A DNA stretch of 64,000 nucleotides from Caecitellus pseudoparvulus (taxonomy: Eukaryota > Protista > Bigyra: Bicosoecida): positions 325,863 to 389,862 of the forward strand of contig CBFFRQ010000064.1 of NCBI GenBank assembly GCA_965644315.1, in the 5' to 3' direction. Of the stretch, positions 37,055-37,894 are shown in pieces. The notes beneath the pieces were generated by a model, which made no database searches, was not told the origin of the DNA, and was given only the letters and a program-made list of their open reading frames with translations. Made by a program: the position numbers and the translations under genes. Within the stretch, counting starts at the first letter, position 1. Every line of letters begins with the position of its first letter.

Positions 37055-37894
37055 TCAACGTAACATGAACAGCCAATAAAGCACGGCCTCCTTCTGGATG
37101 TTGTAGTCCGACAGGGTGCGGCCGTCCTCCAGCTGCTTCCCCGCGAAGATCAGGCACTTGAAGCATTCAAGTGGGATGCCCGCCTTGTCCTGGAGCTTCT
37201 GCCTCACGTCCTCGATCGTGTCGCTGGGCTCCACGTCAAGGGTGATGGTCTTGCCCGACGAGTTCTTCACGAAGATCTGCATACCGCCACGCAGACGCAG
37301 CACCAGGTGCAGTGTGGCCTCCTTCTGGATGTTGTAGTCCGACAGCGTGCGGCCGTCCTCCAGCTGCTTCCCCGCGAAGATCAGGTGCTGCTGATCGGGA
37401 GGGATGCCCTCCTTGTCCTGGATCTTCTGCTTCACGTTCTCGATCGTGTCGCTGGGCTCCACGTCAAGGGTGAAGGTTGACCCACAAGGCATGTGTTGTA
37501 CCCAAATTTGCATGTGTTTGACATCGATTCGCCCAAGTGGAATGATAACGCTTAGTGTTGTCTCTGTGTGGATGTTGTAGTCCGACAGCGTGCGGCCGTC
37601 CTCCAGCTGCTTCCCCGCGAAGATCAGGTGCTGCTGATCGGGAGGGATGCCCTCCTTGTCCTGGATCTTCTGCTTCACGTTCTGCACTCAGCTCAGTTCG
37701 TTTAGCGAAGTTTGCATTTGGTCATGTTTTGAGCGGAGCGTATATGTCAAGGACATGTGTCAAGCACCTGTCACAAGCATACGGTCCGCTGTCAGCGCAC
37801 ACACAATGAGCTGGGCACTCACTTCAATCGTGTCGCTGGGCTCCACGTCAAGGGTGATGGTCTTGCCCGTCAGGGTCTTCACGAAGATCTGCAT
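37055..37894 (-). CDS. Divergent three-unit ubiquitin-like precursor (232 aa): fused di-UBL ending LRLRGG plus a GG-less UBL
   Basis: Intact frame, intron 37682-37822 at the same position as in the paralogs. Unit 1 ends ...[15 protein letters not shown], unit 2 ends LRLRGG, unit 3 ends ...VLYWLFMLR*. Confidence 0.88.

Follow-up and report, generated by a model that had tools for sequence, protein, structure and literature searches.

Can a polyubiquitin locus give rise to a two-domain protein modifier? The question is raised by a single divergent gene, here called gene E, in the 64,000-nucleotide stretch of DNA that was analysed (the window), which comes from contig 64 of a eukaryotic genome of 30.6 Mb and 62% GC. 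Ubiquitin scarcely varies, and the origin of a new ubiquitin-like modifier is regarded as a very rare event; to our knowledge, ISG15 and FAT10, which are modifiers of two domains, are found in vertebrates only, and how they arose is obscure. A preliminary description had read gene E as coding for a tandem di-ubiquitin modifier of the ISG15/FAT10 kind. If this is true, one locus would show the birth of a two-domain modifier within its parent array, one cleavage site having been destroyed and the next kept, and would reveal as well the way in which distinguishing segments persist beside converting neighbours. If gene E is only a dying edge copy, it offers a clean example of the mosaic that gene conversion leaves at the edge of a tandem array, and nothing more.

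Architecture of the array and of gene E

Gene E belongs to a two-level tandem array at 30849–38221 of the window, in which it is the fifth gene, at the high-coordinate edge of a head-to-tail series on the minus strand. The other four (genes A–D, 30849–36635, minus strand) are canonical polyubiquitin genes of 3, 3, 5 and 6 units, each ending in RGGQ and a stop codon, and all 17 of their units encode one identical ubiquitin. They are separated by a 157-nt spacer of identical type and a 239-nt G-rich element, copies of which lie at 31860–32096, 33125–33360, 34845–35080, 36793–37031 and 37983–38221 and vary in the length of their poly-G run. The last of these copies stands upstream of gene E and shows 97% identity to the copies after genes B, C and D; the fourth sits just 3′ of the gene E stop codon, upstream of gene D. 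Every canonical unit has Ala65 together with Asp16, Pro19 and Gln28, a combination that in our view most resembles ubiquitin of the oomycete/stramenopile type. On the plus strand, open frames of 346–596 aa run antisense to the polyubiquitin genes (30879–31919, 32078–33184, 33342–34904 and 35062–36852); these are a by-product of GC-rich repeated coding sequence, not separate genes.

The reading frame of gene E opens with an ATG at 37894 and is read from the minus strand through two exons. Exon 1 (37823–37894) provides 24 codons, which correspond to canonical ubiquitin residues 1–24 of unit 1, and shares 98.6% identity with the first part of internal canonical units. A 141-nt intron follows (37682–37822; donor GTGAGT, end GTGCAG), placed between codons 24 and 25 exactly as in genes A–D. 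Exon 2 (37055–37681) carries 208 codons (37681–37058) for the remainder of unit 1 and for units 2 and 3, and closes with a stop codon (37057–37055) after 232 codons in all. The intact spliced frame of 232 aa that was first proposed was reproduced base by base, with an intron of the GT..AG type. The marks of a pseudogene (stops, frameshifts and lost splice sites) were not found: the 232 codons are open, the GT..AG borders are present and the indels are in frame.

The three encoded units depart from the 17 identical canonical units at 12, 8 and 18 residues, respectively. Unit 1 (80 aa) carries the changes Q62H, K63T, A65T, H68S, L69V, V70I, L71I, R72P, R74G, G75R and G76I, and where RLRGG is expected its C-terminal end reads PLGRI, followed by the four-residue linker DVKH. 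Unit 2 (37283–37513, minus strand; 77 aa; PF00240 E = 1.4e-28) begins with a rewritten 14-residue sequence that contains K6Q, K11S and one inserted Cys; it also carries R42H, L8M and a rewritten strand 1–strand 2 hairpin. It retains I44, K48, K63, H68, V70, R72, R74 and G75–G76, and its LRLRGG, in whose codons only silent changes occur, is followed by Met. Unit 3 (37058–37282, minus strand; 75 aa; PF00240 E = 1.2e-22) has a Leu8 loop rewritten by T7N, L8S and T9S, two Cys residues, a rewritten segment 38–42 that is longer by one residue, and a hydrophobic tail (strand 5 rewritten) that reaches Arg74 and then a stop codon; having no Gly-Gly, it is not conjugatable. A polyubiquitin precursor carries RGG|M at every unit end; in gene E this motif is found only at the junction of units 2 and 3. 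The sequence thus bears out what the preliminary description had listed for unit 1 (loss of LRLRGG, the DVKH linker, K63T and H68S) and for unit 2 (a remodelled N terminus with K6 and K11 lost and one residue inserted, and LRLRGG kept). R42H, which it had noted in both units, proved to be the same CGC>CAC change in each.

Family membership and fold were assessed with exons 1 and 2 searched and folded separately, the codons of the two being counted side by side only in local scripts. Exon 2 matched Pfam PF00240 in three stretches (E = 5e-70), and all three units belong to this family, scoring 64.6 bits for the exon-2 part of unit 1, 98.9 for unit 2 and 79.9 for unit 3 against a cut-off of 25.4. 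An AlphaFold2 run on the single sequence was uninformative (mean pLDDT 47) and was repeated with a 26-row alignment, which gave a complete beta-grasp for both unit 2 and unit 3, strand 5 of the latter being formed by its tail; the linker between units 1 and 2 was of low confidence in this model and is probably flexible. Among the best 60 matches to solved structures, those that rank highest are ubiquitin, polyubiquitin and linear di-ubiquitin; chains of ISG15 or FAT10 do not appear in these 60. Together with the PF00240 matches, this upholds the initial caution that the agreement in length with ISG15 is architectural and not evidence of homology. Judged by its sequence, gene E is ubiquitin by descent.

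Mosaic divergence and gene conversion

Divergence was measured by alignment to genes A and B and against a consensus of 13 internal canonical units, and it proved to be distributed very unevenly. In the cores of gene E (170 codons), 8 of 510 nt deviate from the canonical sequence (98% identity, dS 0.054), the sole replacement there being R42H of units 1 and 2. Its patches (55 codons), whose limits were set by eye, are identical at 90 of 165 nt (~55%), with pS 0.69 and pN 0.38. Along the 678 aligned nucleotides, 65 of the gaps between the 83 differences span no more than 3 nt, where 20,000 permutations gave 26.6 ± 3.5 (P < 5e-5). Patch 1 (37469–37570, minus strand) covers the junction of units 1 and 2, where RGG|M is lost and four codons and one codon have been added; here pS is 0.76–0.88 and pN 0.36–0.44. 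The interior of the gene E intron is unalignable to the introns of genes A–D, which are near-identical to one another.

We searched the 30.6-Mb genome for a second copy of the junction patch, at the DNA and the protein level, and of the intron, and found none. A source of the patches in another ubiquitin-like gene or in an integrated virus of this genome was rejected, since patch and intron are unique there.

The distribution of differences marks gene E as an old paralogue, not a fresh pseudogene. Gene conversion from the canonical genes next to it has replaced its cores, and strongly diverged sequence of its own survives in the intron, at the junction between units 1 and 2, in several stretches of unit 3 and at the 3′ end. 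Because the silent sites of the patches are saturated and the intron interior is unalignable, the gene must be old, and looks young only where it has been converted. The preliminary description had it as still linked to its parent locus: the location within the parent polyubiquitin array stands, but the youth which that wording implied does not. The donors of the conversion tracts are likely to have been genes A–D. Such a pattern is not what would be expected of a recent duplicate under random decay, and an old edge paralogue that is periodically converted appears to be the simplest history. Concerted evolution of polyubiquitin repeats and loci through unequal crossing-over and conversion has been documented (PMC10457151).

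Selection, decay and distribution of gene E

A mosaic of this kind could also be left by a decaying copy. Gene E would then be a non-functional gene at the array edge, its cores repaired by conversion and its patches open by luck or through an earlier function, and the Gly-Gly losses of units 1 and 3 would be its first disabling lesions. We regard this as doubtful, but as only a little less probable than the reading favoured below. The edge position and the mosaic pattern agree with it, in that end copies escape homogenisation and drift, but the substitutions in the saturated patches do not look like drift. These three patches comprise 36 codons, in which 58 of 108 nt have changed, and their pN/pS of 0.48 is about half of the 1.0 ± 0.21 obtained in random neutral walks from the canonical sequence to equal divergence, and none of the ~1,400 stop-free simulations reached this value, although the test is weakened by the canonical lineage, which adds silent changes only and could alone push the ratio towards 0.5. 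Neutral change at the junction, which the preliminary description had named as evidence against its own reading, is thus not what these patches, the junction included, display, that silent-only branch notwithstanding. The replacements in the patches are also conservative (mean BLOSUM62 −0.21 against −1.05 ± 0.28 for neutral change), a measure that the silent-only canonical branch leaves unaffected.

Other features of the gene point in the same direction. All three indels (+12, +3 and +3 nt) are in frame, for which the chance is ~1 in 27, and there is no stop in the 55 diverged codons (chance 0.07–0.28); a long-dead gene so diverged should show at least one frameshift or stop. The splice sites are intact despite the unalignable interior of the intron. 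Over all three units 38 residues have changed, mostly at the surface (K6, T7, T9, K11, K63, H68, R72, R74 and G75–76), whereas just 4 of 46 positions that we take to form the hydrophobic core of ubiquitin are altered (L69V, I13F, I30L and L69W), each from one hydrophobic residue to another. We conclude from these substitution patterns that gene E was protein-coding and ubiquitin-like through most of its divergence, its diverged segments having evolved, by the same signs, under selection for a folded ubiquitin-like protein. Past selection on the patches is no proof of present function.

Several observations agree better with decay. Third-position GC in the patches has fallen to 0.60, about the non-coding level, from 0.89 in the canonical codons at matching places, which indicates that codon usage is not under selection there and that expression is low at best. 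Unit 3 has lost its Gly-Gly to a premature stop. Those of its segments that have diverged only mildly carry replacements almost exclusively (7.5 against 0.5 silent changes), which is not below the neutral expectation. The 88-nt leader or spacer of gene E (37895–37982, minus strand; unique over 37921–37982) contains two upstream ATGs, one at 37966 that is in frame and would add 24 residues to unit 1 if used, and one at 37931 that is out of frame and whose frame enters exon 1; none of the four canonical leaders (genes A–D, 157-nt spacer) has an upstream ATG.

Sequence collections yielded neither an orthologue nor a transcript, and this too agrees with a decaying copy. For the junction of units 1 and 2, whose recurrence in related genomes the preliminary description had proposed as a check, no word triplet is shared with any of 5.8 billion proteins, and degenerate DNA patterns for the junction peptide and a unit 3 peptide found no match in JGI metagenome contigs. 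A search with the whole exon-2 protein listed only canonical polyubiquitins of at least 293 aa; since multi-unit proteins outscore relatives of 210–232 aa, this result is no evidence of absence. An index of sequencing runs returned 20 runs with sampled words of gene E. As the canonical genes share 0.29 of its 31-mers, words specific to gene E are seen only above that share: the eight RNA runs contained 0.17–0.20 of the sampled words, none exceeding the canonical share, which does not prove the absence of a transcript, and the two best DNA runs contained 0.47.

The DNA runs also bear on whether gene E could be an artefact of assembly, a chimeric or error-ridden stretch in a repetitive array. 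The array is indeed highly repetitive, and it is joined differently in the assembly of a near-identical strain (below). The excess over the canonical share means that gene-specific words occur in reads, although the run in question may be the source sample, and the patches are in frame, codon-structured and conservative, unlike sequencing error. We consider an artefact highly improbable.

The near-identical strain came to light through the neighbouring coronin gene, whose product is matched at 100%, over the aligned part, by a protein labelled 'Symbiodinium sp. KB8'. The 9.5-kb contig concerned (CAJNDU010008135.1, GCA_905221625.1) is 98.4% identical to window positions 37983–47314 and so represents a close strain of the organism of the window. 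Because the next named coronin match is Cafeteria, at 51%, the KB8 dinoflagellate assembly probably contains, to judge from these matches, contigs of a contaminating heterotrophic stramenopile close to the surveyed genome. Compared with window positions 36611–38221, the first 419 nt of the KB8 contig lead from the start of a canonical exon 1 through the 157-nt spacer into the 239-nt element, which directly abuts the coronin-side flank; gene E is missing. The element copy in KB8 has the diagnostic bases of the A–B, B–C and C–D copies and a poly-G length of its own. It is possible that this reflects a real difference in array size or a short-read artefact of the repeat; a real absence of gene E from so close a strain would suit a decaying copy.

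A more distant relative is represented by a 21-kb Logan contig of SRR8862141, which was compared with window positions 21471–40295. Its coding DNA is ~72% identical (coronin 70%), and its genes follow the order coronin, PNO1-like, XAP5 and photolyase. Logan samples also include a coronin of 81% identity. No ubiquitin gene occurs among the flanking genes in this contig, hence no orthologue of gene E can be read there. The coronin gene of the window is inverted relative to the SRR8862141 block, and the ubiquitin array lies exactly at the breakpoint.

The predicted product and known modifiers

We infer that gene E is still coding. Ubiquitin precursors are cut only after Gly-Gly, so that units 1 and 2 would remain uncut, the Arg-Gly-Gly site between them being gone, and ordinary ubiquitin-precursor proteases would cut after the LRLRGG of unit 2. 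This cut would release a fused double ubiquitin of 157 aa (24 + 133 residues, in agreement with the count in the preliminary description) with a free Gly-Gly end. The 75-aa unit 3 would be the by-product, a bulky C-terminal cap that could not itself be attached. The double unit could then be activated through its C-terminal domain, where Ile44, Val70, Arg72 and Arg74 are retained, and be joined to targets, where it would serve as a ready-made tag of two ubiquitins that cannot be trimmed; the principle on which ISG15 and FAT10 work would have been reached independently, starting from ubiquitin itself. At the level of sequence, the architecture first predicted, a non-cleavable fusion of units 1 and 2 ending in LRLRGG, is correct.

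Whether such a double unit could be charged depends on its fit to an E1 enzyme. E1 reads the Ile44 patch of ubiquitin, whose Arg42, Arg72 and Arg74 contact the crossover loop, Arg72 being decisive; at the FCCH domain, the contact is polar and differs from one ubiquitin-like protein to another (PMC12355090). R42H on the conjugatable unit 2 is therefore the loss of a known E1 contact. Since unit 2 keeps Ile44, His68, Val70, Arg72, Arg74 and Gly-Gly but carries R42H, L8M and a changed hairpin, its charging appears plausible, perhaps weakened or redirected by these three changes.

The genome contains three distinct UBA1-type E1 paralogues, with matches on contigs 144 (18840–19043) and 211 (32334–32537), on contig 66 (306245–306475) and on contig 13 (679185–679403). 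FCCH, SCCH and ThiF domains occur in all, and all are closest to UBA1 among solved structures. The copies on contigs 144 and 211 agree exactly in match score and in the length of the open frame, and could be duplicates or haplotigs. In the contig-13 enzyme, the crossover loop immediately ahead of the catalytic Cys is rewritten to D-V-K-G-D, against D-P-P-E-D/K in the other two. With three such paralogues, a dedicated E1 for the gene E product is possible. The fullest form of the proposal, an independent ISG15-like modifier that arose from the polyubiquitin array, is charged by an extra UBA1-type E1 such as the contig-13 copy, and has its patches protected by selection against conversion, strikes us as rather unlikely.

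The product could be functional without being a modifier. Left whole or cut only in part, a chain of two or three domains might act as a decoy or regulator that occupies ubiquitin-binding domains, proteasome receptors or deubiquitinases, comparable to UBB+1 or to cleavage-resistant linear di-ubiquitin. The evidence for coding constraint serves this possibility equally well, unit 3 is without Gly-Gly and unit 1 cannot be released. It is harder to reconcile with the perfect LRLRGG and Met of unit 2, where the silent-only changes are difficult to explain unless cutting or conjugation matters; recent gene conversion is an alternative cause of them. The readers of linear di-ubiquitin known to us are, moreover, animal proteins. 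In favour of a decoy, R42H and the changes in the Leu8 loop (L8M in unit 2, L8S in unit 3) would weaken contacts with E1 and receptors on certain faces, and unit 2 keeps Ile44, His68 and Val70 (PMC12355090). We consider a decoy or regulator improbable.

Together, these results lead us to favour, tentatively and at somewhat less than even confidence, an old converted paralogue that is under constraint and codes for a processed, 157-aa fused di-ubiquitin modifier. That the product is coding, selected and ISG15-like in architecture is plausible, again a little short of an even chance.

Known systems resemble this candidate modifier in part. UBB+1 arises from misreading of a transcript and bears a 19-aa extension; it is not activatable, but it can still be bound or ubiquitinated. 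Unit 3 of gene E would be comparable as a ubiquitin fold without Gly76, which could be bound or ubiquitinated but not activated; in contrast to UBB+1, it is encoded in the genome and ends at Arg74. The nearest precedents are altered units encoded by copies of ubiquitin loci. Callis and colleagues reportedly described, in 1995, Arabidopsis polyubiquitin-like genes (UBQ7–9 and UBQ12) that encode repeats with substitutions. In humans, the UBBP4 (UbKEKS) variants, which come from a copy of a ubiquitin locus once taken for a pseudogene, are expressed and conjugated (PMC7066184). In both cases, however, the units are cleavable and carry few point changes, and no fused pair is formed, whereas in gene E a junction is destroyed and the last unit is truncated.

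With canonical polyubiquitin genes of the UBB/UBC/UBI4 type, gene E has in common its head-to-tail units and, as in genes A–D, the intron in the first unit; it also shares with its neighbours the array and the flanking element, and its cores are homogenised with those neighbours as described for such loci (PMC10457151). It differs in keeping Arg-Gly-Gly at only one of three unit ends, and it cannot yield free ubiquitin. FAT10 (UBD) resembles the proposed product in that tandem ubiquitin-like domains act as one tag. It is translated with its Gly-Gly already free, has a CYCIGG tail and does not depend on processing (PMC12355090), whereas the LRLRGG tail of gene E is covered by a 75-aa unit and would need to be uncovered.

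The closest architectural parallel is with ISG15. ISG15 has two ubiquitin-fold domains, an LRLRGG that is uncovered by removal of an extension and a mature length of 157 aa, and the same features are predicted from the sequence for gene E. For its activation ISG15 requires only the C-terminal domain, the N-terminal domain being dispensable, and by analogy activation of the gene E product would be expected to depend on its C-terminal domain only (PMC12355090). Unlike those of ISG15, the units of gene E are near ubiquitin itself: most of its DNA is ~98% identical to the neighbouring ubiquitin genes, and it has no specific sequence relationship to ISG15. The extension to be removed is a short peptide in ISG15, whereas in gene E it is a whole ubiquitin-fold unit.
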